Assembly (NCBI RefSeq): GCF_000143415.4
Contig: NW_003314280.1
Span: 1,720,502-1,780,060, forward strand
Length of the DNA stretch: 59,559 nt
Reading direction: 5' to 3'
Source of the DNA: Selaginella moellendorffii
Lineage: Eukaryota > Plantae > Lycopodiophyta
Shown: positions 1 through 47,992 of the stretch, piece after piece
How positions within the stretch are numbered: the stretch's first letter is position 1
How the letters are laid out: the number at the start of each line of letters is the position of its first letter
Notes under the pieces: model-generated
What the model saw: only the letters and a program-made list of their open reading frames with translations
What the model was told of the DNA's origin: nothing
Database searches by the model: none
Program-made: the position numbers and the translations under genes

Positions 1-182
1 CGGAGCTTGATGGCGGTGTTGAGCACAAAGGGCGTGACGAAGGCATGGATCATGCCCAGGCATTCCATGCGGCCAATGATCTCGTCCTCGGTAAATTGGG
101 AATTGCGAACCTCGCCAACGGATTGGTCATCATCGTCAAAGAACAGAGGATCGTGGATCGATAGAGGTGACGTCATTGCCAT
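1..182 (-). CDS. 5' end of an O-methyltransferase copy running off the left window edge (completeness unknown)
   Basis: The reverse strand from ATG at 182 reads MAMTSPLSIHDPLFFDDDDQSVGEVRNSQFTEDEIIGRMECLGMIHAFVTPFVLNTAIKLR, nearly identical to the OMT at 46669. Confidence 0.85.
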   Translation of the reverse strand, partial: MAMTSPLSIHDPLFFDDDDQSVGEVRNSQFTEDEIIGRMECLGMIHAFVTPFVLNTAIKL

Positions 183-375
183 TTGGATCGAGGGCGCAAA
201 AATCGATCAGCAATTGGGGAGAGCTTTCGACAGCAGGAGACTTGCACTTGCGATCGATTCTCTCGATTTTTAGAATCTATTAGAACTGGAATTAGAGATG
301 GAAGAGCTCCAAAATTGTAGAGTGGACCTCAGTTGTGATCGTCGATTTGTGGAGATGTGAGAGAGGAGGCTCCAA

Positions 376-381
376 TTTATA
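376..381 (-). promoter_or_regulatory. TATA box of the left-edge OMT copy
   Basis: TATAAA in the same CCCTGCTATAAATTGGAGCC context as 46454, 29981 and 31139-31144. Confidence 0.65.
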
Positions 382-2199
382 GCAGGGAGGGTTCACAGGA
401 ATAGGCTGGTTCCAGGGCTACCTTATTCTTCACGTGTTTGTGAATTTTATATGGCTGGCCATGCCTCCAGCAACTTACTAATTGAGAGATTTCCATCTCC
501 AAATCGCATGGCAAAGCCCTAGTGCAATTTGGCACTAGGAATGTGAGCAAAGATCAGTCATATAGTGATTGCTAAGAGGAGTAATTGGTAGCAACAAACA
601 TGACAAGGGAGGCTGGGGCTGTCATGGATGACAACAGCTCACAACAATATATTTTCTGGTTTATCACTATTATAATTGATTTAAAATTTAGTAAAAATAA
701 TGACTACATATTTTTTGTTTTATTACTATTATAAATGTAAATTAATAAAATTTCCAATTTGACTTTAAATCTTAAATTTATAAAACTATTGTGTCTTAAA
801 TTATAGTTACAAATATCAATTATAAATAATAACAATCTCAATGTAATGCAATAACTTAAAACTCATGTACCCCTTGTGGGTCATTTCCCATTCTAATACC
901 AAGAAGCAAGTTTTGTTTGTGACTAATGTTGGTGACCATGGGCAATGAACAAGATTGCACGCTGAGATAAGAGGGGTACTCATCTTCTCCTTGAATCTCC
1001 AGGGCCTTCTCTACTTCGGGCTTTTCCAAACATGTCACTGTGCTCTGCTGTGGAGGTTGATGGGCTCGAGTTGGAACCAGCCATCAATCTTTTCCATGGC
1101 TGAGATCCGCCATAACAGAACATGACATTGACATACATTCTAGAGGGACAGAGGTGAGTGAGGGATCTGGATAAATCCACGCCAAGCCAAAGAGCTTGGG
1201 AGGTATTGGCGAGGCTGGATTATTAGACTAAGAACATCATGATTGGATGTTTTCACAACTGTGGTCTTTTTTATGTATGACAGTGACTTGAACAATCCAA
1301 CCAGATCCAAAAACCAGATTTTACTAAATGGACATTTCCTTGCATGGACAACTTTAATTAACCCTTGCATGGATTTTTGCTGTTAGAAACAAAGAAGAAG
1401 AAAAAGTTATTTGAACTAGAAAAAAGAAAAAATGAGATTATCCAACAAGCTCATGTGTCTTTGGCTAACAATAATTATGTGTTGGACTTGTCGTCATTGG
1501 TGTCCACAGCCTGTGTTCCTGGTTGCTCCAAGATGCTAAGTCTTGCATCCGGCTGGGCCAGTCAGCATTTAGTCTCCTTGCAAAATCTTGGGCTTCCTTA
1601 AATCTCAATCAATGTATGTCACCTTGAACGAAACTAGCGCCTGCAAATTGGATTGGAGATGAAAAACCTTGCTTTTTGAGCTCTAGAGACGAGAACAAAG
1701 CTCTCAAGGAAAACAATGTGGAAGAAGGGAGTATACACCCACATACCTCCTTTGAGAAGCTGTCCCGAAGAAGGGGACGTGATTCTCTGGAACACCATGA
1801 TCTCAGCCTAACTCTTCCTGAATCAGAGAACATTTGAGTGAAAGGAATACGAAGTTAAAAAACAGAGCTGATTTTACAAATGTCGTGGTTCCACTCCCCC
1901 GCAAGTATATCAATGTATTGCGCTCCCACGGCACCACTATATGAATCGACATCACAGCTTTGGGAGGGCGATGAAGGCTATGATCTCCATCTGGCGATGG
2001 TGATGGAGTGGCAATGCCATCGATTCGTGTGTGAACAAAGACTCTATTTCCTGCAGCTCCATCCCCCAAGAAGGTAGAGCTTGCTGCCCAGAGCCTGGCA
2101 CACGAATCCCCATGCCTTTGGTGAGGAGGAATCCGGTGCCACTGGGTATCAAAAGCTCTTATCGTCCAAGCCCTGTTTGGCTCTGGAGTCTGGCAAATA

Positions 2200-2619
2200 G
2201 TTGATGAGCAACTGTGAAAGGAGCAGCGCAAGTCTCGTGCACAGGGAAGCGTGCCGGATCGACGAGCTAAGCACCGGCAATTCACATTCTTCTTGCTATC
2301 ACTATATGCCTGGTTTGGGCATATTGACAAGGCAATCAAGGTCTTTCACACGATTCAGGATCCCAATGTCTTCTCCTGGAAAATCCTGTTACAGGCCTTT
2401 TGCGATGACAATCGCGTTGCTGAGGATGGAAACACCTTTGATTCTCTGCAGGAGAGGGACGTGGTGACCTGGACTGCGATGGTGATTGCATATGCCCGCA
2501 TTGGGCATCGTTTGCGCCAAAGTTTTTCTTCACGGGCCGCGGCGAAACCAGGTGGAATGCCTCTCATCCACCGCGAGGTCTTGCTCAATGGATGCTGTCT
2601 CAGGGACAAGTCAAGTTAA
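2200..2619 (+). pseudogene. PLS-class PPR gene fragment
   Basis: SLYAWFGHIDKAIKVFHTIQDPNVFSWKILLQAF and FDSLQERDVVTWTAMVIAYARIGH are typical PPR repeats. The fragment is frameshifted and truncated. Confidence 0.8.
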
Positions 2620-3729
2620 TCCCAGTTGCTACTCGAGTACGTACTGCCACTTCCCGGTCCAATAAGGTCACATCGCTGGTTGGAATTCATGGCTTGGTGA
2701 CTTGAGATCTTCCTTTTTCTTTTCGCAGGAGAGGAAGTTTTTCGATGAGAAGTCCGTCCCGCTAGACACCAAAACGTTGTGTGAGCTCACGTCGGCAGCT
2801 GAAAGCCTTGAGGTGGACTTGACCAGTCGACTCTAGATTGGATGATGGAAGGAAAAACACCGAAAGAGATCTGGACTGCCAGACGATCTAACTGAAGTAG
2901 GAAGCTAATGTTATAGATCTCTCACGGGCATGGTAGCTTGCGAATTGTTTAATTCCAGCTCAGCTGTGGACAAAAAATGCATTTTGCTGGCGAGCTTCAT
3001 GCAGATTGGAGATGTAGACATGGTGGCGTGGTTGAAATTGCAGCACAGCACGAGATGAAGCCAAAGAAATGTTTGATCGATATGAAGGATCAAATCTCAT
3101 GAACATAATGCTAGAAGCATCAAATTCATGATCACGGCTCTTTTTCCCCAGGGTGGATATTGTGAAAAACATTGCTCCTTCAATTCGCTTAGGACCACCA
3201 AAACTACAACACAAGTCCGTCCACAAGCCAATCAGCAGGCTGTCCGATCAGCAGGATTCCTCATCCCCTCCGGCTACTAGCGACAACTAATTAAGTTGCT
3301 TCGTTTGGACTAATTGAGAAAACTCTCCGGTTTTTTATTTCTTCCCCTTTTTTAGCTGCCACTTAGCTCAAGTTTAGGGTTCATCGTTGAAGGGCTCGGA
3401 CGAGATGTCTTGGGGTTGGCACACAAGAATGATCAGTAACCTCTTAGTAAACAACGGAGGCGAACCGCTCTTTTATAAAACTTATGCGTTTGATTGAGTT
3501 TGCTTGATGTTCCATCAACTTTGTTTTTGCGTATGCAATTGTCTTGCTGACGACATCAAAGTTCGACAATACACCAGACTGAATAACAACAAAGTTCCTC
3601 AAAGTTGCTGACGAACAACATCCTACAAAGTGATGAAGTAACACAACACCAAGTTTTCACACCAGTACGTGAGAAGGTCCAAAATAAAATTAAAAAAACT
3701 ATGTATGCCCGCACACCAGCACTGCAATA

Positions 3730-27084: not shown

Positions 27085-30000
27085 CAAAGCTAAAAAAGGG
27101 GAAACGAAGCAACTTAATTAGTTGTCGCTAGTAGCGGGAGGGGATGAGGAATCCTGCTGATCGGACAGCCTGCTGGATGGCTTGTGGACGGACTTGTGCT
27201 GTACTTTTGGTGGTCCTAAGCGAATTGAAGGAGCAATGTTTTTCACAATATCCACCTTGGGGAAAAAGAGCCGTGATTATGAATTTGATGCTTCTAGCAT
27301 TATGTTCATGAGATTTGATCCTTCGTATCGATCAAACATTTCTTTGGCTTCATCTCGTGCTGTGCTGCAATTTCAACCACGCCACCATGTCTACATCTCC
27401 AATCTGCATGAAGCTCGCCAGCAAAATGCATTTTTTGTCCACAGCTGAGCTGGAATTAAACAATTCGCAAGCTACCATGCCCGTGAGAGATCTATAGCAT
27501 TAGCTTCCTACTTCAGTTAGATCGTCTGGCAGTCCAGATCTCTTTCGGTGTCTTTCCTTCCATCATCCGATCTAGAGTCGACTGGTCAAGTCCACCTCAA
27601 GGCTTTCAGCTGCCGACGTGAGCTCACACAACGTTTTGGTGTCTAGCGGGACGAACTTCTCATCGAAAAACTTCCTCTCCTGCAAAAGAAAAAGGAAGAT
27701 CTCAAGTCACCAAACCATGAATTCCAACCAGCTATGTGACCTTATTGGACCGGGAAGTGGCAGTACGTACTCGAGTAGCAACTGGGATTAACTTGACTTG
27801 TCCATGAGACAGCAACCATTGAGCAAGACCTCGCGGTGGATGAGAGGTATTCCACCTGGTTTCGCCGGGGCCCGTGAAGAAAAACTTTGGCGCAAACGAT
27901 GCCCAATGCGGGCATATGCAATCACCATCGCAGTCCAGGTCACCACGTCCCTCTCCTGCAGAGAATCAAAGGTGTTTCCATCCTCAGCAACGCGATTGTC
28001 ATCGCAAAAGGCCTGTAACAGGATTTTCCAGGAGAAGACATTGGGATCCTGAATCGTGTGAAAGGCCTTCAATATGCCCAAACCAGGCATATAGTGATAG
28101 CAAGAAGAATGTGAATTGCCGGTGCCTAGCTCGTCGATCCGGCACGCTTCCCTGTGCACGAGACTTGCGCTGCTCCTTTCGCAGTTGCTCATCAACTATT
28201 TGCCAGACTCCAGAGCCAAACAGGGCTTGGACGATAAGGGCTTTTGATACCCAGTGGCGTGCCAGGCTCTGGGCAGCAAGCTCTACCTTCTTGGGGGATG
28301 GAGCTGCAGGAAATAGCGTCTTTGTTCACACACGAATCGATGGCATTGCCACTCCATCACCATCGCCAGATGGAGACCATAGCCTTCATCGCCCTCCCAA
28401 AGCTGTGATGTCGATTCATATAGTGGTGCCGTGGGAGCGCAATGTAGTTTTGCACATTGATATACTTGCGGGGGAGTGGAACCACGACATTTGTAAAATC
28501 AGCTTCTAAAATCAGCTCTGTTTTTTAACTTCGTATTCCTTTCACTCAAATGTTCTCTGATTCAGTAAGAGTTAGGCTGAGATCATGGTGTTCCAGAGAA
28601 TCACGTCCCCTTCTTCGGGACAGCTTCTCAAAGGAGGTATGCGGGTGTGTACTCCCTTCTTCCACATTGTTTTCCTTGAGAGCTTTGTTCTCGTCTCTAG
28701 AGCTCAAAAAGCAAGGTTTTTCATCTCCAATCCAATTTGCAGGCGCTAGTTTCGTTCAAGGTGACATACATTGATTGAGATTTAAGGAAGCCCAAGATTT
28801 TGCAAGGAGACTAAATGCTGACTGGCCCAGCCGGATGCAAGACTTAGCATCTTGGAGCAACCAAGAACACAGGCTGTGGACACCAATGACGACAAGTCCA
28901 ACACATAATTATTGTTAGCCAAAGACACAAGAGCTTGTTGGATAATCTCATTTTTTCTTTTTTCTAGTTCAAATAACTTTTTCTTCTTCTTTGTTTCTAT
29001 ACAAAACATTAACAGCAAAAATCCATGCAAGGGTTAATTAAAGTTGTCCATGCAAGGAAATGTCCATTTAGTAAAATCTGGTTTTTGGATCTGGTTGGAT
29101 TGTTCAAGTCCCTGTCATACATAAAAAAGACCACGGTTGTGAAAACATCCAATCATGATGTTCTTAGTCTAATAATCTAGCCTTGCCAATACCTCCCATA
29201 GCTCTTTGGCTTGGCGTGGATTTATCCAGATCCCTCACTCACCTCTGTCCCTCTAGAACGCATGTCAATGTCATGTTCCGTTGTGGCGTATCTCAGCCAT
29301 GGAAAAGATTGATGGCTGGTTCCAACTCGACCCCATCAACCTCCACAGCAGAGCACAGTGACATGTTTGGAAAAGCCCGAAGTAGAGAAGGCCCTGGAGA
29401 TTCAAGAAGAAGATGAGTACCCCTCTTATCTCAGCTCGCGATCTTGTTCATTGCCCATGGTCACCAACATTAGTCACAAACAAAACTTGCCTCTTGGTAT
29501 TAAAATGGGAAAAAAATGGATCATTACTACTGTTTTAAGTTATTGCATTACATTGAGATTGTTATTATTTACAATTGATATTTGTAACTATAATTTAAGA
29601 CACAATAGTTTTATAAATTTAAGATTTAAAGTCAAATTAGAAATTTTATTAAGTTGTTCAATTTATGACTAAATTTTAATAAAACAAAAAATATGTAGTC
29701 ATTAATCAATTATAATAGTGATAAACCAGAAAATATATTGTTGTGAGTTGTTGTCATCCATGAGTTTGTTGCTACCAATTACTACTCCTAGCAATCACTA
29801 CATGACTGATCTTTGCTCACATTCCTAGAGCTAAATTGCACTAGGGCTTTGCCATGCGATTTAGAGATGGAAATCTCTCAATTAGTAAGTTGCTGGAGGT
29901 ATGGCAGCCATATAAACTTCACAAACATGTGAAGAATAAGGTAGCCCTGGAACCAGCCAATTCCTGTGAACCCTCCCTGCTATAAATTGGAGCCTCCTCT

Positions 30001-30370
30001 CTCACATCTCCACAAATCGACAATCACAACTGAGGTCCACTCTACAAATTTGGAGCTCTTCCATCTCTAATTCCAGTTCTAATCCCAGTTCTCCTAATAG
30101 ATTCTAAAAAATCGAGAGAATCGATAGTCACCTGCTGTCGAAAGCTCTCCCCAATTGCTGATCGATTTTTGCGCCCTCGATCCAAATGGCAATGACGTTA
30201 CCTCTATAGATCCATGATCCTCTGTTCTTCGAAGATGATGACCAATCCGTTGGTGAGGTCGCAATTCCCAATTTACCGAGGACGAGATCCTTGCCTGCAT
30301 GGAATGCCTAGGCATGATCCACGCCTTCGTCATGCCCTTTGTGCTCAATGCCGCCACCAAGCTCCGGGTC
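27085..30370. repeat. Inverted copy of arm A (1-3360), including a PPR fragment at 27788-28195(-)
   Basis: Reverse-complement identity with 1-3360. Confidence 0.95.
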
Positions 30371-31179
30371 TTCAACATCGTCACGCACGCCGCAATTCCT
30401 CCCACCACGGAGGAGATCACGGCCAAAATCTCCTCCTCGTCCTCATTCGCCGCTGATCAAACGATCAAACTCATCGATCAAACGCATCGCCGCTGTCGAG
30501 CACGACCTCACGGGAATCTCCACGTGGCTGGCGCCAGGTCGGACTACCTCGCCGCTCGCTATGGAAATGCATGCCAGGTTCAGGCGTCGTGGCAGAGGCT
30601 CCACGAGGTCGTGCTCGACGGCAGCGATGCGTTTGATTGATGCGTTTGATCGTTTGATCGGCGGCGAATGAGGACGAGGAGGAGATTTTGGCTGTGATCT
30701 CCTCCACGGTGGGAGGAATTGCGGCGTGCGCGACGATGTCGAAGACCCGGAGCTTGATGGCGGCGTTGAGCACAAAGGGCGTGACGAAGGCATGGATCAT
30801 GCCCAGGCATTCCATGCGGCCAAGGATCTCGTCCTTGGTAAATTGGGAATTGCGAACCTCGCCAATGGATTGGTCATCATTGTCGAAGAACAGAGGATCG
30901 TGGATCGATAGAGGTGATGTCATTGCCATTTGGATCGAGGGCGCAAAAATCGATCAGCAATTGGGGAGAGCTTTCGACAGCAGGAGACTTGCACTTGCGA
31001 TCAATTCTCTCGATTTTTTAGAATCTATTAGGAGAACTGGGATTAGAACTGGAATTGGAGATGGAAGAGCTCCAAATTTGTAGAGTGGACCTCAGTTGTG
31101 ATCGTCGATTTGTGGAGATGTGAGAGAGGAGGCTCCAATTTATAGCAGGAAGGGTTCACAGGAATTGGCTGGTTCCAGG
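29946..31179. repeat. OMT-derived palindrome: arms 29946-30509 and 30605-31179, 95-nt loop
   Basis: Each arm has the TATA box (29981 on +, 31139-31144 on -), 5' UTR and the first ~90 OMT codons. The loop is internal OMT exon-1 sequence. Confidence 0.95.
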
Positions 31180-31657
31180 AATGGCACCCGGTATGTAAAA
31201 CCTTCGCATTTGTTTTTTTCTTTCTCGGAGGTGGCAGGGTTGACCAGCGCCAGTCAAACTCTCACTGTTTGCCGGTCAAACGTGGTGGTATGGAACTTTT
31301 ACACCAAGTTTTGTTTCACTTGGACACGAAATAATCGCAAGCATCGTATAAAGAGTGGAAATTAGAAAAGAGTTTTTGCGGAGACTGGGTCGCTGCAGCG
31401 ATTGACACAAATTTGGGTTCGTCTTTGACGACTACACAATCGGCACGAATTCTGCATTGAAGACATGCGAGCGAAGATGGTTTGAATGGATGTTCGAGTG
31501 TACATTTTAGAAACTAGTGTCAAACGATTTAGACAGGCATTGATGACAAAGGTATTCTACACATGGACTCTAATCTTGTTTTCTCTTTTCTTGGATGCTC
31601 GATCACAATCACAGACACTTTATTCCAGGAGGATTTCTTTAGCATGAAAGTCAACTA

Positions 31658-32852
31658 TCAAACTCGAGTTATGAGGCCTTTGCGTTCGAAGCTGTCAACG
31701 CAATCGTCAAACATTTGCTCCAGCGACTTGAATTGGATCCCAAGATCGTCCTGAAGCTTTGTGGAGTTGAATCCCTTGAAATATGGCGGGGACAAGACTT
31801 CGATCCTGCAAGCATGCAAAGGAAGGGGAAGTGCGAAAAAAATAGGAAAACTTTGTTGCGTGGTGTCACTCTTGGGGGGGGGCGGTTTGGTGCTCGGGAT
31901 AGGTCTTGGACAGGAAGCTGGCGAGCTCGGTAGCTCATGTTGATCGCACAAACATATCTTCCAGTGCCTTTGGGATGCGTATAGGCAGGGAGGTGAGCTT
32001 GAGCAACGTCGTCGAGATGAACGTATCCAGCCTGATCGAAACAGTTTCCGTGGCTCCTACAATGTGTTTGGAATCTCAAAACTATTTTTGTTCTGCTTTC
32101 GAGATCACTCGCAGTCGGAGAATATCGGCAGCGCATGCGGTGGGGTGGCCTTGGACGAGAGAAGTTCTCCCACGACGCTGGGAGCGATTGTGATCACCTC
32201 TATGCCGTTTTCTTTCCCAAACTCGAGTGCTGCTTGCTCGGGTAGAGTCTTTCCCAGACCATACCACATTTGGACTTGAAAAACTTGTAAGAATTCGTTC
32301 TTTCTTGCTTGTGGAAATAAGAATCTTACCTCAATCTCACGGCAGCAGTCTGGGGAGCTCCACACCGATTCATCAAGTCGTTCCTCGCACTAACAGAAGC
32401 CACGGATGACGTGCACACCACTCGCTTGACTGTTGTGGATTGTTTCCAGGCATTGAGCACGTTCAGAGTTCCAAGTACGCATGGATCAACAATCTCGGTC
32501 TGGAAGAAGAACCAAAGACAAGAAAAAGCGAACCAGTAAAAGTTCGAGATACAAGACTAGACCATAGCTGGCAGAGAGCTGTTGAATCGAAGGAGTCAAG
32601 CAAAGTTACCTCCTTGTAGCTGAAAGTCACGGCCCGCGAGATGGAAAACTTGGACAATATCGTCAAAGGCGCCTAATTCCGTGACAAGGTCGGCCTTCTT
32701 TCTCTCCCCCGGAAGCTCGCACAAACAACAAAAGCAATTTCTAAGTAGAATCGATTAGCCTAAGTACCCTGACAACGTGATGTCCCTCCTTCAGTAGCCG
32801 CTTCACGAAGGAAACCAGATGCCCAAACCTTCTTCTCGTTCGCCATCGCCAT
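31658..32852 (-). pseudogene. DFR/CCR-like copy C, degenerate
   Basis: Contains [15 protein letters not shown] and YVHLDDVA. Multiple deletions and frameshifts, including in the Rossmann motif. Confidence 0.9.
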
Positions 32853-33049
32853 GGAATGACCCTAAAGTTGAACACGGTTCTCTCTCACAAGAATTATCAG
32901 TAACCGGGAAACAGTGCTTTTTAACTATTCAATGCTGGACAATGCAATGGAACTTTCATTCCCTTCGCTTGAGCGATGATGTCTATTAACCTGTAAAGCT
33001 AAAACATAAATCTGGGATGATTCATCTACCTGGTAACTAATAACAGATG

Positions 33050-33200
33050 CGGAATAACTATCACATTGTCGGGCTGGACCACCTTTCTGTCCTTTGCAGG
33101 CCAACACACATTACAAAAGCGCAAAGAGTAAACTCCTCACTAAACTGAATGAAAGATTACCTGCCACTGTGTCAAGTGCCTTAATCAACATGGCAAAGGT
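33050..33200 (-). pseudogene. Highly degenerate PGDH remnant upstream of DFR copy C (also at about 44320-44440)
   Basis: CACATTGTCGGGCTGGACCACCTTTCTGTCCTTTGCAGG resembles 14190-14228, and TGTCAAGTGCCTTAATCAAC resembles 14339-14358. Confidence 0.65.
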
Positions 33201-33821
33201 CTTGTCCGTTATAGTAATCAACGGAGCAAAATCAGTATATGCTCTACCACAGCAAGAGTTTGGATTTAAACCCGAGACTTCAAAGAAGAAGAGCCTTTGC
33301 CTCAAACCAACTAAGTTGGCTAAGTAACGGGTCAGCACCAAAGTCAGAGATCAAACAAGGCTAATGCCAACGGTCTGTTGGCAACTTACCCATGAAAATC
33401 CAATACCCAACCCAAGCCAAATAATGCTAATGATTTTAGTAGTACTTGTAAAAGTTGCTTGAGATAGATAAATATAGAGTCCATAGCTCCGAAGAGCCAT
33501 GCAGTCGTTCCTCTAAGACCTGTATGAATCTGCAGAAATTGGCCTTTGATGGATCGCCCAGAAAGTTGTGCACGTGGAGGGCATCCAGCAAAAACTTCAA
33601 ATAAAAGTTGGAGCATTGTTTTTTCTTGCAGGAACAATTGAGACAGAGAGAGATATTATACTCGTCCAGAGTTATTAGATTATAATTTAAGACACAATAG
33701 TTTTATAAATTTAAGATTTAAAGTCAAATTAGAAATTTTATTAAGTTGACATTTGTAGTTGCAATTTATGACTAAATTTTAAGTCATTTATAATAGTTAA
33801 AAAACAAAAAAAATGTAGTCA

Positions 33822-34473: not shown

Positions 34474-37400
34474 GCCTCCCGTTAAACACCATCCTGATTC
34501 ACTCTCTCTCTCTCTGCTTACCTGGCAATGACGTGGCACAGCCCTCCTTTTTGTTTTATCTCCAGCGCACTCCCTCTCCCGTCCGTCGCCGCTGCGCACT
34601 CCCGCCCTCGGCTATCGCCCGCCTGCGGCTCCCGCCCGCACTCCCACGTCCGCCCGCGCCCAGCGTGCGCCCTAAAATTACTTCCACGTGGCCACAGCCC
34701 CAACACTTAGCCAAATTTCAATCAGCCCGCCCTAGTCCACCCATTCACGCCGGATGGTTGCCCCATAATTGACCTAAAAACGTTTCTGTTTCTTTTATGA
34801 TCAAGCATGGCAGCAGCACATCAATTTCCAGAGGTAAGCAATCAATTCAATTTCATATTGATTCAAGAAAATCATTTAGGATGCCCCATGGCTTGATGAG
34901 GTGCAAGAATTCCATGAAAAGGATTATTTTTGTGTAGATGATTTAGATTGGAATTTGTCTAAATCAAATGAAACTATAGCTCCTATTGTGTATATATTAC
35001 AGAAGGATGTGAACAAATTTCTAGATGGTGAGAGGAGAAGGGGTGATGGAGTGGATTTTTGGCGATTTTCTAACAAAAATCGTGATTCTGGAGATTTGAA
35101 ATGACCCAAAAACACAAGCTTTTTATCATTAATCAGGTATATCTTTTTAACAAAATATAATTACTAACTTCTTGATACAAGTATTGGTGTGAATATGGAA
35201 AACAAGATGCTAGTGAAACATCCTCTATTACACCAAAGTTAGGACTTGGAAGTAGACTGGGTCGAAGTTCTAATAAGCAGGGTTGCCTTTGCAATTTTTT
35301 GGTCAAACAGTTTTACAAATGGCCTGATTATGTTTAGATTACATATTATCATAGAGAGCATTGTGATAAGAATGGGATTCCTTGTCATGGTCAACTTGAT
35401 CTGACTGGAGGAAAGTCATTATTTCCTCAGAAGCTTTCAGCAGATATTCGACATTGGGTGATTCATATGATTCAGCAGGATTTCACATCAAATCAGATTT
35501 ATAATGAGCATATACAGATTGTGGGAAGGAACAAGTCAGCTGGTGAACCTCTTCATCGAGATGATTTTCTAACTATGCAGGATATCAACAATCTGCATAG
35601 AAAGTATTTGCTTTCAACTTATCGATTACATGAGAATGACGCATAGAGTGTACGTATTTGGAAGAACACAAATCCTGAGAAAGTATTTTTCTATTAGGAA
35701 GGTGATTGAGGTAAAGATTGTTTTACTATTGGGATCCAGACAACTTAGCAACTACAAAAGATGGTGAACTTTTCAAATAATAATTTATTGAGTCTTGACA
35801 CAACTTTTGGAACTAATTGCTACAAGGTAAAATTTTCATTCAGTTTTAAGTGATTAATACTTAATAATTTACAGTTCCCATTATACACCATGCTTGCTTT
35901 TGATTATCATGGAAATGGTATTCCAATTGCATGGGTTTTAACTTCTAGTGAGAAAGGAGAACATGTGAAGAATTGGATGATAGGTTTTAAAAAGCGAGTT
36001 TTAGAACACATGCCAAATTGGAAACCACGGGCGATAATGATTGATGATGTTGAAGTAGAGATTAATGCTATAAGGTAATTAATTTGATTTGAAATAATTT
36101 AATTGTTTTCTTCTATATAGAGCTACATTTGATTGTTAAATTCTATTATGTATTTGGCATGTAAGGAGGAATTGTCTCAAACATATTATTTGTAAGGTGA
36201 AATCTTGGGATATTAGGATGGAAATATGGAAATGCCTCGGAGATATTATGTATCATTCAATTCATGTAGCTTTTCATGATGATAATATTATGCGAGTTGA
36301 GATTAAACAACTTATTGAACATTTTGAGGTGGATTTTCAAAATGAAGTAGCCTTTATCAAGTATTTTCAAGACGAATGGAAGGACAAAGTTGGTAAGTGA
36401 ATCAATAATTTAATTTTTATAATTTATTTTAATTTATATTTGATAGATATATGGGTTGTTGCTGCTCGAAATTTCCCTCATGCTAACAAGGAGACAAATA
36501 GTTCGATTGAGGCATTCCATGCAAATATGAAAGCTATATTCTTGTCCGAAAAAAAACATGCTCGCAATCGAAGGATGGATTGGGCAATTCATCAACTTAC
36601 TACTAAGGTTCATGCGAGGTACTGGTTTACTAGTTATTGCAAAGATCATGGTTTTATCTGAAACCATGCATATGAAAAACTAATCGATGGTGCAATTGTT
36701 AAAGCAATAAATATTAATGACTCTCAAGTAAAATTCGATAAGGACAATACTCACAAATCCTATGTACAATTCTCTTCAGATCCAGCTATATGGTATCTTG
36801 TTGTCGGAGGTGAAAGACACAGTGATTGGGTTTTTTCGACTTGGTGTAATTGTCCGTGGGCAACCAAAAGAAACTTTTGCAAACATCAAGCAAAAGTTAT
36901 TATGTTAAAACAAGGAGAAAAAACTGATTGGACTACAACTAGTTATGAGGTTCAACCATCACAATCGCATGCAATCTTAGAACTTGGGCCAGATGATTTA
37001 TTTTATCGTCATCAAGATTTTGAAGCACTTGACTTGGAAGCTATGACAGAGGTAATTCACTTATAAATTAAAATTTTGAAATACTTATAAAAATTTGAGC
37101 AGGAAAACATCCATCAAGATGTTTATCATGAGCAAGAAATTCAGTTGGAGACTACATTAGAGGTAAACTAACATATTTTATATACTAATATATATGAATA
37201 TTGAGCAGGAAGATATCCATCAAAATATACAGCATCAACAAGAAATTCAGCTAAGGACTACTATAGAGGTAATTTACACTAAGTAAATTTTAAATATTGA
37301 TATGAACTTTAAGCAGGAAGATATCACTCCATCAAAAGTTACAAAAGCGACATTACAACAAAAGATGATGGATATCTTACAAGATCTTCCTGATGAAGAA

Positions 37401-38086
37401 GCTTTTTTATTTATGGTTGACAACGATTTAGAAATGATATAGCAAAAGGTTGCAACTTTTAAAGCCAGGCCAGACGATCTTATTCATCCTGCAGCAGAAT
37501 TTCAACAGCGTGTTGATAGTTATGGTACATCCTTGAAGCGAGCAAAACCTTTGGTGGAAAAAATTACAAGTAAAAGAAAAGCTTCTAATAGTCTAGAAGC
37601 AACTCCTTTTATTAGGCAGAGGAAGACAAGAAAGAAAAGCTCTTTAAACGAAAAACTCAATCTTAGCAAAGAATAAATAAAAAACAAACTCTTTATATAC
37701 TTACATTGCATATATTTAAATTAGTGAGAAGATTTCATAAGTTTACCACTCCTAATGGTCATCCATGACACTCATTGGCCACGTAAAGCATGTAGGAAGG
37801 CGTCCACGCGGGCGCTGATTGAAATTTGGCTAAGTGTTGGGGCTGTGGCCACGTGCAAGTAATTTTAGGGCGCACGCTGGGCGCGGGCGGACGTGCGGGG
37901 GCGGGTGGGAGTGCGGGCGAGCGGGCGGGCGAGAGCCGCGGGCGGGCGATAGCCGCAGGCGGGAGTGCGCAGTGGCGACGGACGGGAGAGGGAGTGCGCT
38001 GGAGATAAAACAAAAAGGACGGCTGTGCCATGTCATCGCCAGGTAAGTGGAGAGAGAGTGAATCAGGATGGTGTTTAACGGGAGGC
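34474..38086 (+). mobile_element. Full-length Mutator-like element (MULE), 3613 bp, with inactivated transposase
   Basis: GC-rich TIRs of about 250-270 bp begin GCCTCCCGTTAAACACCATCCTGATTCACTCTCTCTC. 9-bp TSD AACACTGAC at 34465-34473 and 38087-38095. Empty site at 7544-7552. Confidence 0.97.
34808..37677 (+). pseudogene. MULE DDE transposase with SWIM zinc finger
   Basis: LSLDTTFGTN, GNGIPIAW, IMIDD, CIWHV, TNSSIEAFH and WCNCPWATKRNFCKH. Several premature stops. Confidence 0.92.
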
Positions 38087-43769: not shown

Positions 43770-44646
43770 TAGTTTACTGCAACTCAAATAACACGAACAC
43801 ACTTCTTCTCCTTGAATAAAATCTCTCTGATTTGATCCAAGAATTAAAACAAAGAAGATAAAAGTGGACGAGTATAATATCTCTCTCTGTCTCAATTCTT
43901 CCAGCAAGAAAAAAAAATGCTCCAACTTTTACATTTGAAGTTTTTGCTGGATGCTCTCCACGTGCACAACTTTCTGGGCGATCCATCAAAGGCCAATTTC
44001 TGCAGATTCGTACAGGTCTTAGAGGAACGACTGCATGGCTCTTCGGAGCTACGGACTCTATATTTATCTATCTCAAGCAACTTTATGAAAATCATTAGCA
44101 TTATTTGGCTTGGGTTGGGTATTGGATTTTCAAGGGTAAGTTGCCAACAGACCGTTGGCATTAGCCTTGTCTGATCTCTGACTTTGGTGCTGACCCGTTA
44201 CTTAGCCAACTTAGTTGGTTTGAGGCAAAGGCTCTTCTTCTTCAATATCAAACTCTTGCTGTGGTAGAGCATATACTGATTTTGCTCCATTGATTACTAT
44301 ATCAGACAAGACCTTTGCCATGTTGATTAAGGCACTTGACACAGTGGCAAGTAACCTTTCACTCAACTTAGTGAGGAGTTCACTCTTTGCGCTTTTGTAA
44401 TGTGTGTTTGAGGAAAGGTGGTCCAGCCCGACAATGTGATAGTTATTCCGCATCTGTTATTAGTTACCAGGTAGATGAATCATCCCAGATTTATGTTTTA
44501 GCTTTACAGGTTAATATACATCATCGCTCAAGCGAAGGGAATGAAAGTTCCATTGCATTGTCCAGCTTGAATAGTTAAAAAGCACTGTTTCCCGGTTACT
44601 GATAATTCTTGTGAGAGAGAGCCGTGTTCAACTTTAGGGTCATTCC

Positions 44647-45926
44647 ATGGCGATGGCGACACCACCGCCGTCGTTCCAGACGACGTCGATCCATGCCCGG
44701 CGAATCCCTCGTCAGTGCTCAAGAACACGCTGTGCAAGCTCTCGCGAAACTCACCCTTTTCGAAGCTTGGTTTCCTTCGTGAAGCGGCTACTGAAGGAGG
44801 GACATCACGTTGTCGGGGTACTTAGGCTAATCGATTCTACTTAGAAATTGCTTTTGTTGTTTGTGCGAGCTTCCGGGGGAGAGAAAGAAGGCCGACCTTG
44901 TCACGGAATTAGGCGCCTTTGACGATATTGTCCAAGTTTTCCATCTCGCGGGCCGTGACTTTCAGCTACAAGGAGGTAACTTTGCTTGACTCCTTCGATT
45001 CAACAGCTCTCTGCCAGCTATGGTCTAGTCTTGTATCTCGAACTTTTACTGGTTCGCTTTTTCTTGTCTTTGGTTCTTCTTCCAGACCGAGATTGTTGAT
45101 CCATGCGTACTTGGAACTCTGAACGTGCTCAATGCCTGGAAACAATCCACAACAGTCAAGCGAGTGGTGTGCACGTCATCCGTGGCTTCTGTTAGTGCGA
45201 GGAACGACTTGATGAATCGGTGTGGAGCTCCCCAGACTGCTGCCGTGAGATTGAGGTAAGATTCTTATTTCCACAAGCAAGAAAGAACGAATTCTTACAA
45301 GTTTTTCAAGTCCAAATGTGGTATGGTCTGGGAAAGACTCTACCCGAGCAAGCAGCACTCGAGTTTGGGAAAGAAAACGGCATAGAGGTGATCACAATCG
45401 CTCCCAGCGTCGTGGGAGAACTTCTCTCGTCCAAGGCCACGCCACCGCAAGCGCTGCCGATATTCTCCGACTGCGAGTGATCTCGAAAGCAGAACAAAAA
45501 TAGTTTTGAGATTCCAAACACATTGTAGGAGCCACGGACTGTTTCGATCAGGCTGGATACGTTCATCTCGACGACGTTGCTCAAGCTCACCTCCCTGCCT
45601 ATACGAATCCCAAAGGCACTGGAAGATATGTTTCTTCGATCAACATGAGCTCTACCGAGCACGCCAGCTTCCTGTCCAAGACGCATCCCAAGCACCAAAT
45701 CGTCCCCCTCCTCCCCCGACGAGTAAGATCACGCAACAATTTTTTTTAATTTTTCTCGCAGTTCTCATTCCTTTTCATGCTTGCAGGATCGAGGTCGTCA
45801 TATTTCACGGGATTCAACTCCACAAAGCTTCAGGACGATCTTGGGATCCAATTCAAGTCGCTGGAGCAAATGTTTGAGGATTGCGTTGACAGCTTCGAAC
45901 GCAAAGGCCTCATAACTCGAGTTTGA
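44647..45926 (+). pseudogene. DFR/CCR-like copy E, degenerate
   Basis: Mirror of copy C. Foreign sequence at about 44660-44767 replaces the start of the Rossmann fold. Confidence 0.9.
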
Positions 45927-46453
45927 TAGTTGACTTTAATGCTAAGGAAATCCTCCTTGAATAAAGTCTCTGTGATTGTGATCGAGCATCCAAGAAAACA
46001 GAGAACAAGATTAAAGTCCATGTGTAGAATACCTTTGTCATCAATGCCTGTCTAAATCGTTTGGGATTGGCAGACACTAGTTTCTAAAATGTACACTCGA
46101 ACATCCATTCAAACCATCTTCGCTCGCATGTCTTCAATGCAGAATTTGTGCCGATTGTGTAGTCGTCAAAGACGAACCCAAATTTGTGTCAATCGCTGCA
46201 GCGACCCAGTCTCGCAAAAACTCTTTTCTAATTTCCACTCTTTATACGATGCTTGCCACTATTTCGTGTCCTAGTGAAACAAAACTTGGTGTAAAAGTTC
46301 CATACCACCACGTTTGACCGGCAAACAGTGAGAGTTTGACTGGCACTGCGCTGGTCAACCCTGCCACCTCCGAGAAAGAAAAAAACAAATGCGAAGGTTT
46401 TACATGCCGGGTGCCATTCCGGGAACCAGCCAATTCCTGTGAACCCTCCCTGC

Positions 46454-46459
46454 TATAAA
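46454..46459 (+). promoter_or_regulatory. TATA box of the intact OMT
   Basis: TATAAA 215 nt upstream of the ATG, followed by a pyrimidine-rich tract. Conserved in all four copies. Confidence 0.65.
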
Positions 46460-46668
46460 TTGGAGCCTCCTCTCTCACATCTCCATAAATCGACGATCAT
46501 AACTGAGGTCCACTCTACAAATTTGGAGCTCTTCCATCTCTAATTCCAGTTCTAATCCCAGTTCTCCTAATAGATTCTAAAAAATCGAGAGAATCGATCG
46601 CAAGTGCAAGTCTCCTGCTGTCGAAAGCTCTCCCCAATTGCTGATCGGATTTTGCGCCCTTGATCCAA

Positions 46669-47992
46669 ATGGCAATGACGTCGCCTCTATCGATCCACGA
46701 TCCTCTGTTCTTCGACGATGATGACCAATCCATTGGCGAGGTTCGCAATTCCCAATTTACCGAGGACGAGATCCTTGGCCGCATGGAATGCCTGGGCATG
46801 ATCCACGCCTTCGTCACGCCCTTTGTGCTCAACGCCGCCATCAAGCTCCGGGTCTTCGACATCGTCGCGCACGCCGCAATTCCTCCCACCGCGGAGGAGA
46901 TCATGGCCAAAATCTCCTCCTCGTCCTCATTCGCCGCCACCGCCCCCGCCGCCACTCCCCAGCTCGGGGTGCTCCGCCGGATCCTCCGGTTCCTGTCGCA
47001 GAGAAAGGTCCTCCGCCACGTCAGCCGAGACGACGGCCACGTCGGCTACGCGCTCACGGGAATCTCCACGTGGCTGGTCCGGAGCCGCGCCAGGTCGGAC
47101 TACCTCGCCCCGCTGCTCGCCATGGAAATGCATGCCAGGTGTCAGGCGTCGTGGCAGAGGCTCCACGAGGTCGTGCTCGACGGCGGCGATGCGTTTGATC
47201 GTGCGAACGGGAACTACTTCTGGGACACCGGCCGCCATGACGCGCAGTTTAACCGCGTGGTAAACGACGCGATGATCGCGTTTAGCACCGCCACCATGTC
47301 GCTCGTGCTCGAGAGCTACCGTGGATTCGCGGGCATCCGACGGCTGGTGGACGTTGGCGGCGGCATGGGCCACTCAGTGGCCAAGATCGTGGAGGCATAC
47401 CCCCAGATCCAGGGAGTTAACTACGACCTCTCGCATGTCATAACGACGGCGCCGAAAATCCAAGGTAAAAATGCTTGCCGCTGACCTGGGCCTGTGAGAG
47501 TCTTACACGCGGCTGGCTTACATTTGCAGGCGTGGAGCACGTCAGCGGGGACATGTTTGAGAGCGTGCCCGCGGCGGATGCCATTTTCATCAAGGTGAAG
47601 CTATTACTTCTTACTTGGCGGCTAGATTAATTAACGCTGGATTTGCATTAATGCAGTCGGTTTTACATAATTGGGACGACGAGCACTGCGTCAAGCTCCT
47701 CAACAATTGCTACCGAGCGCTCCCGCAAGATGGGAAGCTCATAATCGTGGATATCATCTACAAGTCGAGCGATACTTTCGCAGCGCTGGAGGCCAACTTG
47801 GACATGATCATGCTGGCCTACACCACGGGCGGGCAGGAGAGAACTCCCAACGAGTGGGAAGAGCTTCTCATCTCTTGCGGCTTTGGCGGGATCACGTTCC
47901 ACACAAACATGCCGACCAAGGAGGGAGTGATCGAGGCTTACAAGATGGTAGAGTTGCGGGACGACGAGCAAGAGAGGATCTCAAGGCTGTGA
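46669..47992 (+). CDS. COMT-type SAM-dependent O-methyltransferase, 398 aa; exons 46669-47464, 47530-47594, 47657-47992
   Basis: Dimerisation domain (AAIKLRVFDIV, LRRILRFL), LVDVGGGMG, YDLSHV, GDMFESVPAADAIFIK, SVLHNWDDEHC and GGQERT. GT-AG introns are in frame. Confidence 0.95.

Follow-up and report, generated by a model that had tools for sequence, protein, structure and literature searches.

A tail-to-tail inverted repeat of SmCOMT-like 3 fragments in Selaginella moellendorffii, probably a self-silenced relic of rearrangement

Architecture of the inverted repeat

We analyzed a stretch of 59,559 nucleotides from the lycophyte Selaginella moellendorffii (GL377584.1), referred to here as the window. 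An inverted repeat of ~1.2 kb lies in it in tail-to-tail orientation, and an intact O-methyltransferase (OMT) gene, SmCOMT-like 3, is found 15.5 kb away. Coordinates of all features are given in Table 1. A plant COMT-type O-methyltransferase gene has complete Dimerisation and Methyltransf_2 domains in an open frame. The product of SmCOMT-like 3 contains both Pfam domains and the gene qualifies in full; neither arm of the repeat does.

The two arms, of 564 nt (left) and 575 nt (right), face one another across a spacer of 95 nt between their inner ends, much as an earlier note on this DNA had described them (arms of about 560 bp). Each arm carries the TATA box CTATAAAT, a 5'UTR and the OMT ATG followed by 89-90 OMT codons, and the coordinates of both copies bear out what the note had said of these elements. 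Judged from sequence, the inverted duplication covers the first ~520 bp of SmCOMT-like 3, comprising the core promoter, the 5'UTR and 90 codons. Identity between the arms is 94.9% at aligned bases (89% when indels are counted), and a BLAST comparison of the segment with its own reverse complement gives 89.4% identity over 1248 columns with 28 gap positions. Folded as RNA, either strand forms a single almost unbroken stem with a minimum free energy of -985 or -963 kcal/mol, in agreement with the long fold-back that the note had envisaged. The loop was correctly recognized there as OMT-derived, and differs from the gene by 10-, 5- and 1-bp deletions and one substitution. The innermost 56 nt of each arm are not colinear with the OMT gene and consist of a 21-nt filler followed by an inverted copy of a short OMT segment. 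The notion of a promoter in each arm holds for the TATA box, present in both, but not for the DNA beyond it, since OMT homology upstream of the TATA box ends after 35 bp in the left arm and extends for ~2.5 kb in the right.

Table 1. Features of the inverted repeat, its flanks and the intact gene (window coordinates).
Feature	Position	Strand	Description
Inverted-repeat block 1	29946-30125/31000-31179		98% identity
Inverted-repeat block 2	30126-30259/30856-30989		93% identity
Inverted-repeat block 3	30259-30509/30605-30855		93% identity
Left arm	29946..30509	+	core promoter (TATA 29980-29987), 5'UTR, ATG 30186, ~89 OMT codons
Left-arm inner end	30454-30474; 30475-30509		filler (21 nt); inverted copy of OMT 47165-47199
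Loop	30510..30604	+	OMT exon-1 sequence, gene positions 47053-47164
Right arm	30605..31179	-	mirror of left arm; TATA mirror 31138-31145, ATG 30929
B-type flank	31180..33668	-	inverted copy of 2.5 kb upstream of intact OMT; 87-100% identical
A-type flank	27102..29945	+	unrelated to OMT upstream region; CpG o/e 0.60
Third OMT 5' fragment (S)	1..416	-	inverted copy of 29946-30366 plus flank
JGI gene model SELMODRAFT_413041	30002..30923	-	242 aa
Intact SmCOMT-like 3	46419..47992	+	homology from 46419; TATA 46453; ATG 46669; exons 46669-47464, 47530-47594, 47657-47992; 398 aa

The intact gene shares 96.7% identity with the right arm and 93-95% with the left, close to the nearly identical target some 16 kb distant of which the note had spoken. 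The right arm shares 223 and the left arm 125 perfect 21-mers with the sense strand of the intact OMT, an identity sufficient for slicing. Both arms are dead gene fragments, because the left arm has a 10-bp deletion in its 5'UTR and a 1-bp frameshift in its OMT codons, and each arm holds half a Dimerisation domain (profile positions 7-55 of 93, with no match to Methyltransf_2). In the right arm the frame of the 90 OMT codons is uninterrupted and continues through the filler and the inverted sequence as a 152-aa ORF (30929..30471), and the half domain there scores 31.9 bits. These properties, together with the existence of the gene model SELMODRAFT_413041, would be those of a real gene for a truncated dimerisation-domain protein, such as a dominant-negative OMT partner. 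We find this hardly credible: the second half of the model, joined to the right-arm ORF, is the left arm translated in antisense, and no reads in two RNA-seq runs support it. A look-up of the model returned GenBank, UniRef and MetaClust entries only, with no RefSeq XP accession, and in the protein collection the ORF was found in the reference model and in no other assembly. SELMODRAFT_413041 is an annotation artefact, explained by the hairpin locus.

The two arms are flanked by different DNA. The right arm runs on into the B-type flank, which holds a perfectly identical tract of 625 bp (32145-32769, the reverse complement of 44816-45440) that points to recent gene conversion. The left arm meets unrelated DNA exactly at the end of the repeat. 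This A-type flank is duplicated in inverted orientation at 417-3306, where it is joined to the third OMT fragment, itself interrupted by the window edge. The A-type flank is CpG-poor, and methylation could pass from it into the adjoining left arm with no siRNA involved.

That the structure is an assembly artefact, from a chimeric clone or two haplotypes fused head to head, seems very improbable. The 2011 reference assembly is its only source, and DNA run X1 (contigs only) contains no hairpin-specific contigs, those over the right arm carrying the intact-gene letters. Over the 31 kb compared, the collinear scaffold GL377583.1 has the intact gene and no hairpin, in a stretch that stops ~4 kb before the hairpin-equivalent position. 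Against this, holes in contig data, such as that at the hairpin centre in X1, carry no weight, and there are no Ns in the window. Between the arms there are 5% substitutions as well as indels, the note too having pointed to SNPs and indels, and the mutation spectrum is arm-specific and CpG-biased. The filler at the junction is templated, which is a repair signature, and the two flanks are different sequences, each with its own paralogue.

RNA reads at the repeat and at the intact gene

We examined two raw polyA RNA-seq runs (X16 and X17; 2 x 9.2 million reads). SmCOMT-like 3 mRNA is present in both, and the gene is expressed from both scaffold copies (GL377584.1 and GL377583.1). Zero reads in these runs could be assigned to the hairpin and zero cross its junctions, in a two-sample polyA survey that is insensitive to hairpin RNA diced quickly or confined to certain tissues. 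There is no coverage at 29400-30323, in the left flank and the outer left arm, and each run has one read over the left arm and the loop that is ambiguous as to its copy of origin. Over the right arm and its flank, all reads at diagnostic sites carry the intact-gene letters (3-6 per site per run), and their loose ends continue into intact-OMT sequence. A search of indexed public RNA runs with 31-letter words found none with hairpin-specific words and no RNA assembly with the junction; the sole indexed run with words from the hairpin centre has a contig there that is the intact OMT. The supplements of a small-RNA study have no entry for the locus (PMC5569507), Rfam gave no family match, and a literature search found neither the hairpin locus nor its gene models mentioned in any paper.

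The loop-spanning transcript that the earlier note had proposed to look for is therefore missing from the two runs and the public index, with the intact OMT expressed. This goes part of the way toward the outcome that the note itself had named as counting against its proposal. Its suggestion of a proto-miRNA locus also fares poorly. A young MIRNA gene is a short imperfect fold-back that yields one precise miRNA/miRNA* duplex, and the ~560-bp stem found here is nearly continuous; a near-perfect stem of 1.1 kb is of the hpRNA rather than the MIRNA kind. The repeat has the form of an endogenous hairpin-RNA locus, being long, near-perfect and foldable as one RNA. The further idea of tissue-specific control through the two upstream contexts found no support.

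CpG decay in the stem

CpG sites have decayed in the stem, where 19-27% have been lost through C>T/G>A transitions. The right arm has lost 7 of 37 sites and its flank 2 of 117 (p=0.0007), and the arm remains distinct when the gene-converted tract is left out (flank 2/75; p=0.006). The loop has lost none of ~11. When sites are pooled, the loss is 19/88 in the stem versus 2/86 in unpaired sequence (p=9e-5). CpG transitions account for 10 of 16 lineage-specific substitutions in the left arm and 5 of 8 in the right, small counts that total 24 substitutions. Where the right arm differs from the intact-gene copies B and H, 7 of the 15 differences reflect a CpG lost from the arm and 0 the reverse. 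In other duplicates in the window, CpG transitions make up 7-28% of changes. From this stem-limited decay we infer a probable footprint of germ-line cytosine methylation confined to the stem. In S. moellendorffii, repeats are methylated and genes are not (PMC2442089).

The same CpG loss might reflect heterochromatin of the generic sort found at repeats or pseudogenes, spread for instance from the CpG-poor left flank (CpG o/e 0.60), at an inert scar that never gave rise to hairpin RNA or siRNA. CpG loss is seen in TE-like duplicates of the window as well, at 14-17% of sites, the two RNA-seq runs hold no transcripts of the locus, and 24-nt siRNAs are scarce in lycophytes (PMC5569507; PMC7111516). 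We nevertheless regard this explanation as rather unlikely, given that decay also affects the right arm, at a distance from the CpG-poor flank, but neither the flank adjoining that arm nor the loop. RNA-directed methylation would be expected to leave just such a boundary, one that falls at the edge of the paired region.

The 5' region of the intact gene has a CpG o/e of 1.13 and no CpG loss on the stem of its lineage, which argues against a long-term methylation of its transcription start site (TSS) in trans, one of the effects of hairpin siRNAs that the earlier note had proposed. These observations also bear on whether the locus is an active hairpin-RNA gene, in which the right-arm promoter or a neighbour would transcribe the fold-back and DCL4 or DCL3 siRNAs would slice OMT mRNA or methylate its 5' end. 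The near-perfect stem on both strands, the 21-mers shared with the target and the 2.5 kb of OMT's own upstream region retained by the right arm all speak for it, as do the presence of DCL1, DCL3 and DCL4 in this species (PMC5569507) and a stem-limited CpG decay that implies past siRNA-type targeting. There are precedents in miR163, whose methyltransferase targets gave rise to it through an inverted duplication (PMC5388894), and in the wheat Iw1 inverted repeat, which represses W1-COE (PMC8005961). An active hairpin nonetheless appears improbable when set against the lack of any assignable or junction read, the intact-gene type of every informative read, the lack of the junction in public RNA assemblies, the expression of the intact gene from both scaffold copies, its undecayed 5' region, and promoters that lie inside the putatively methylated stem. 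Of the proposed RNAi against OMT, what stands is the sequence capacity and a CpG decay that fits a target of RNA-directed methylation; what does not is the hairpin transcript, of which none was seen.

Origin of the locus and comparison with known systems

We consider the locus to be, with reasonable probability, a young by-product of rearrangement, a methylated and self-silenced inverted-repeat relic rather than a demonstrated regulator of OMT, given that no polyA RNA was seen from it and that the intact gene is expressed and free of a methylation footprint. Its probable source is one complex repair or replication rearrangement in the gene cluster. A 3-kb piece comprising the OMT upstream region and 5' end would have been copied in inverted orientation. 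A filler, stuttered and copied from local templates, would then have linked its broken end to 147 nt of inverted sequence from slightly further along exon 1, and the fold-back copy of 564 nt would have stopped in unrelated DNA, 35 bp past the TATA box on the upstream side. The junction of filler and inverted OMT piece is common to both arms. Site patterns give a star tree, in which the right arm groups neither with the left arm nor with the intact gene. The simplest cause of the stem decay would be a hairpin RNA whose siRNAs directed methylation in cis, and, with both TATA boxes in the stem, such methylation would shut the locus off, as for hairpin transgenes.

Three other origins were considered and set aside. 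Capture by a transposon (a Pack-MULE or fold-back element) does not match a locus with no target-site duplication outside 29946 and 31179, whose repeats are the gene fragments themselves and whose right side is 2.5 kb of OMT upstream DNA. Simple palindromisation of a single copy of the gene is at odds with the differing flanks and with an inner junction that has filler and an inverted piece. A deletion between two complete convergent genes, of the LGC1 type, is unlikely with the same odd inner junction in both arms.

Natural tail-to-tail inverted repeats that silence or methylate their paralogues include rice Low glutelin content1 (LGC1) and Arabidopsis PAI1-PAI4, for which read-through transcripts, siRNAs or trans-methylation, and a phenotype, have been demonstrated. 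PAI1-PAI4 is driven from an unmethylated promoter outside the repeat. The Selaginella locus resembles both in that truncated or adjacent paralogous copies converge tail to tail around a short spacer, after a rearrangement within a gene cluster that left intact paralogues nearby. It differs from both in having no transcript seen and an intact gene without a methylation footprint, and from PAI1-PAI4 in having its promoters inside the repeat.

The soybean CHS inverted repeats yield tissue-specific siRNAs. The Selaginella locus is similar to these repeats (the I locus) and to wheat Iw1 in being a repeat of a specialised-metabolism gene near its target or cluster, with a proposed role as off-switch. 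Iw1, an inverted repeat of W1-COE, produces a defined 21-nt miRNA, miRW1, that directs target cleavage (PMC8005961). The Selaginella hairpin, by contrast, is known from its sequence, any small RNAs and target cleavage being putative, and its host is a lycophyte with no DCL2, no phased siRNAs and few 24-nt siRNAs (PMC5569507). As in MIR163, which derives from SABATH methyltransferases (PMC5388894, PMC1790633), homology between the arms and the target extends far past 21 nt, and that target, too, is a small-molecule methyltransferase. Unlike young MIRNA genes, the Selaginella locus has a nearly perfect stem of ~560 bp, which places it at the hpRNA stage, and no Rfam match. Hairpin-RNA transgenes silence themselves through methylation of the repeat and the adjacent promoter (PMC9263138). 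The Selaginella locus also has a promoter in or next to a near-perfect repeat, and the methylation of the repeat and transcriptional shut-off predicted for such an arrangement match its stem-limited CpG decay and absence of RNA. The Selaginella locus differs from these transgenes in being natural, with a methylation that is read from mutation spectra only.

It is also conceivable, though a long shot, that the hairpin is a structural allele, present on GL377584.1 and not on GL377583.1, that is transcribed in some organ and diced by DCL4 or DCL3 into siRNAs that tune SmCOMT-like 3, the CpG decay being a footprint left by RNA-directed DNA methylation (RdDM). If so, a natural hairpin-RNA regulator of a specialised-metabolism gene would be on record for the first time outside seed plants, and RdDM could be tested at an existing locus in a lineage where 24-nt siRNAs are few.

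It is accepted that hairpin siRNA loci and young MIRNA genes arise from gene fragments duplicated in inverted orientation, and to our knowledge nearly all such loci studied to date come from flowering plants. The Selaginella hairpin is a clean, young lycophyte example with its intact target 15.5 kb away and a collinear scaffold free of it over the 31 kb compared. As it stands, the probable relic is the kind of by-product ordinarily left by a gene cluster prone to rearrangement. If methylation of its stem and the corresponding siRNAs were confirmed, repeat-triggered RNA-directed methylation would be seen to work in Selaginella despite its weak 24-nt siRNA class, and the locus would illustrate why most newborn hairpins die, silencing their own promoters before they can become regulators.

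Structure of the inverted OMT repeat

The inverted OMT repeat proposed in the earlier note was confirmed by a repeat search of the window, by BLAST and by RNA folding of both strands. Three contiguous pairs of inverted blocks were found (29946-30125/31000-31179, 98%; 30126-30259/30856-30989, 93%; 30259-30509/30605-30855, 93%), with 95 nt between their inner ends. BLAST of 29946-31179 against the window aligns it to its own reverse complement at 89.4% over 1248 columns with 28 gap positions, and also finds a third OMT fragment at 1-416 (fragment S). The right and left arms match intact OMT 46419-46938 at 96.7% and 93.1% identity, respectively, the latter with indels included. RNA folding gives a single near-continuous stem from either strand (-985 and -963 kcal/mol). 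The window, GL377584.1:1720502-1780060, contains no Ns, and an assembly artefact is very unlikely. The structure is known from the reference assembly alone because the right-arm contigs of X1, a DNA contig set, are of the intact-gene type and leave the centre uncovered, although contig holes prove nothing. Coordinates of the main features are tabulated below.

Features of the hairpin and of the intact OMT gene (window coordinates)
Feature	Position	Strand	Description
A-type flank	27102-29945		left of 29946; unrelated to OMT; CpG-poor
Left arm	29946-30509	+	
Loop	30510-30604	+	
Right arm	30605-31179	-	
OMT-upstream copy, inverted	31180-33668		right of 31179; 2.5 kb; matches reverse complement of 43865-46418
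SELMODRAFT_413041 (EFJ26660.1)	30002-30923	-	original JGI/GenBank model; 242 aa; spans hairpin
Intact OMT exons	46669-47464, 47530-47594, 47657-47992	+	introns 65 and 62 bp

A four-copy alignment shows that each arm consists of OMT 46419-46937, a 21-nt filler built from stuttered pieces of the adjoining 'gatgcgtttgatcg' motif, and OMT 47165-47199 in inverted orientation. The first of these pieces supplies a TATA box, 5'UTR and 90 codons. In all copies homology starts at the same base, 35 bp before the TATA box. The 90 codons form an uninterrupted frame in the right arm, whereas the left arm lacks 10 bp of the 5'UTR and carries a 1-bp frameshift; either arm has at most half of the Dimerisation domain. 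The loop is also OMT sequence, as previously suggested, and corresponds to 47053-47164 in the + orientation with 10-, 5- and 1-bp deletions. A promoter had been proposed in each arm. Both arms do contain the TATA box, but they are unequal, because the right side keeps 2.5 kb of OMT upstream DNA whereas the left arm abuts the A-type flank and has a core promoter only, in foreign surroundings. The A-type flank is present again, inverted, at 417-3306, adjoining fragment S; together these form an inverted copy of 27102-30366 that is cut by the window edge. No annotated full-length OMT or hairpin-like gene model matches fragment S.

The intact OMT has Pfam Dimerisation and Methyltransf_2 domains and is 100% identical to ADE88154, 'caffeyl alcohol/5-hydroxyconiferyl alcohol 3/5-O-methyltransferase-like 3' of Selaginella moellendorffii. 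It belongs to the SmCOMT-like set of Weng et al. 2011, as cited in bioRxiv 10.1101/2021.05.27.445924. SELMODRAFT_413041, named 'O-methyltransferase dimerisation domain-containing protein' in UniRef, is an annotation artefact that reads through the hairpin: its N-terminal half is the right-arm reading frame and its C-terminal half is the left arm translated in antisense. Its look-up entries include no RefSeq XP accession, and it was not found in any other assembly of the protein collection searched. A short epimerase-like gene model (31927-32496, -) adjoins the right arm and falls in the inverted copy of a region that carries a 259-aa model (44653-45926, +) upstream of the intact OMT.

CpG loss in the stem

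Deamination of 5-methylcytosine classically shows up as an excess of CpG transitions. When changes were polarised across five copies, CpG>TpG/CpA transitions accounted for 10 of 16 left-arm-specific and 5 of 8 right-arm-specific changes, compared with 7-28% of changes in other duplicates of the window. Seven CpGs of the two intact copies are lost in the right arm, with no change in the opposite direction. The flank co-duplicated with it has lost 2 of 117 CpGs (Fisher p=0.0007 vs the arm), or 2 of 75 with the gene-converted tract removed (p=0.006), and its non-CpG divergence equals or exceeds that of the arm. None of the approximately 11 loop CpGs is lost, and each 35-nt inner stem piece has lost one. 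Pooled, CpG loss is 19/88 in paired DNA vs 2/86 in unpaired DNA (p=9e-5).

If an inverted repeat undergoes RNA-directed methylation, CpG decay would be expected only where a double strand can form, as observed here; the other main alternative, methylation of an inert scar with no siRNAs involved, seems doubtful. In S. moellendorffii, methylation is found on repeats but not on genes (PMC2442089), and the species has DCL1, DCL3 and DCL4, few 24-nt siRNAs, and neither DCL2 nor phased siRNAs (PMC5569507). The intact OMT retains a CpG o/e of 1.13. It carries no methylation footprint, which argues against long-term methylation of its TSS in trans.

Transcription and the case for regulation

In a public run index, DNA runs contained 22-27% of the words of 29600-31500 and RNA runs 7-16%; for the words of the hairpin-specific centre (30425-30695), matches came from one RNA run only, covering 13%. 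Raw RNA-seq runs X16 and X17 (9.2 million reads each), X5 (contigs of the centre-matching RNA run) and X1 were placed on 29400-31700. Each RNA run placed 14-16 reads, nearly all at 30632-31093 and 31556-31700. At seven right-arm diagnostic sites all RNA reads carry intact-OMT letters, three X17 reads diverge at 30660 into intact OMT beyond 46938, and the X5 contig diverges at 30637 into intact OMT beyond 47200. Flank reads at 31616-31646 bear letters of the intact-OMT upstream region rather than the hairpin side. The inner left arm and loop have one read per run, not assignable to any copy. Because diagnostic letters and read ends are those of intact OMT and depth is zero at 29400-30323, no read in X16 or X17 is attributable to the hairpin, a negative of limited power because the libraries are polyA-type, from two samples, with 3-6 reads per diagnostic site per run.

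The same reads show that the intact OMT is expressed. At 30762 (gene position 46836), 4/4 X16 reads are of GL377583.1 type, the collinear scaffold with a second intact copy, and 2/2 X17 reads of GL377584.1 type. OMT copies of both scaffold types are expressed; on these very small numbers, the two may differ in expression level or X16 and X17 may come from different genotypes.

The earlier note had siRNAs from the hairpin acting on the neighbouring OMT mRNA. This mechanism is possible on sequence, with 223 and 125 perfect 21-mers to the target in the arms, but receives no support from the RNA data. With neither hairpin-attributable reads nor a methylation footprint on the target, active regulation of OMT is unlikely.

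Origin of the locus

Over the shared 519 bp, site patterns give a star tree with 13, 6 and 5 unique changes in the left arm, right arm and fragment S; the branch leading to the two intact copies has five changes, and no change groups the arms together. Both arms have an identical odd inner junction. We infer that the simplest history would be a single complex repair or replication event in three steps. An inverted copy of 43865-46937 would be made first; synthesis would then switch via templated filler to the opposite strand at 47199 and copy back to 47053; and fold-back copying of the new strand for 564 nt would end in A-type DNA. Fragment S, with its flank, would have been copied later from the left arm and flank in inverted orientation.

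The region is rearrangement-prone and contains tandem and inverted segmental duplicates and a 625-bp gene-conversion tract. This tract is perfectly identical in inverted orientation (32145-32769 vs 44816-45440), compared with 87-97% for the rest of the OMT-upstream copies, a sign that the inverted duplicates, approximately 12 kb apart, have recently undergone gene conversion. GL377583.1 encodes an identical OMT protein; its sequence runs collinear with window 3420-27053 and from there passes straight into the OMT upstream region, and no additional OMT fragment occurs within the 31 kb examined there. An AT-rich 3.6-kb insert (34474-38086), probably a DNA transposon or a fold-back element, has approximately 235-bp inverted termini (34503-34726/37814-38061, 92-95%) and is missing from the collinear position of GL377583.1. 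A tandem segmental duplication (8196-12826/17113-22194 and 15424-17082/22197-23877, 96-98%) carries Ferritin_2-type (desiccation-related) and epimerase/reductase genes, is single copy on GL377583.1, and has further copies 14-35 kb left of the window.

The hairpin has an architecture in common with rice LGC1, PAI1-PAI4, the soybean CHS repeats, Iw1 and MIR163, but the demonstrated activities of those systems are not seen here. The best-supported reading, which we consider probable, is that a recent rearrangement left the hairpin behind as a by-product, that its stem became methylated, and that the promoters inside it have been switched off.
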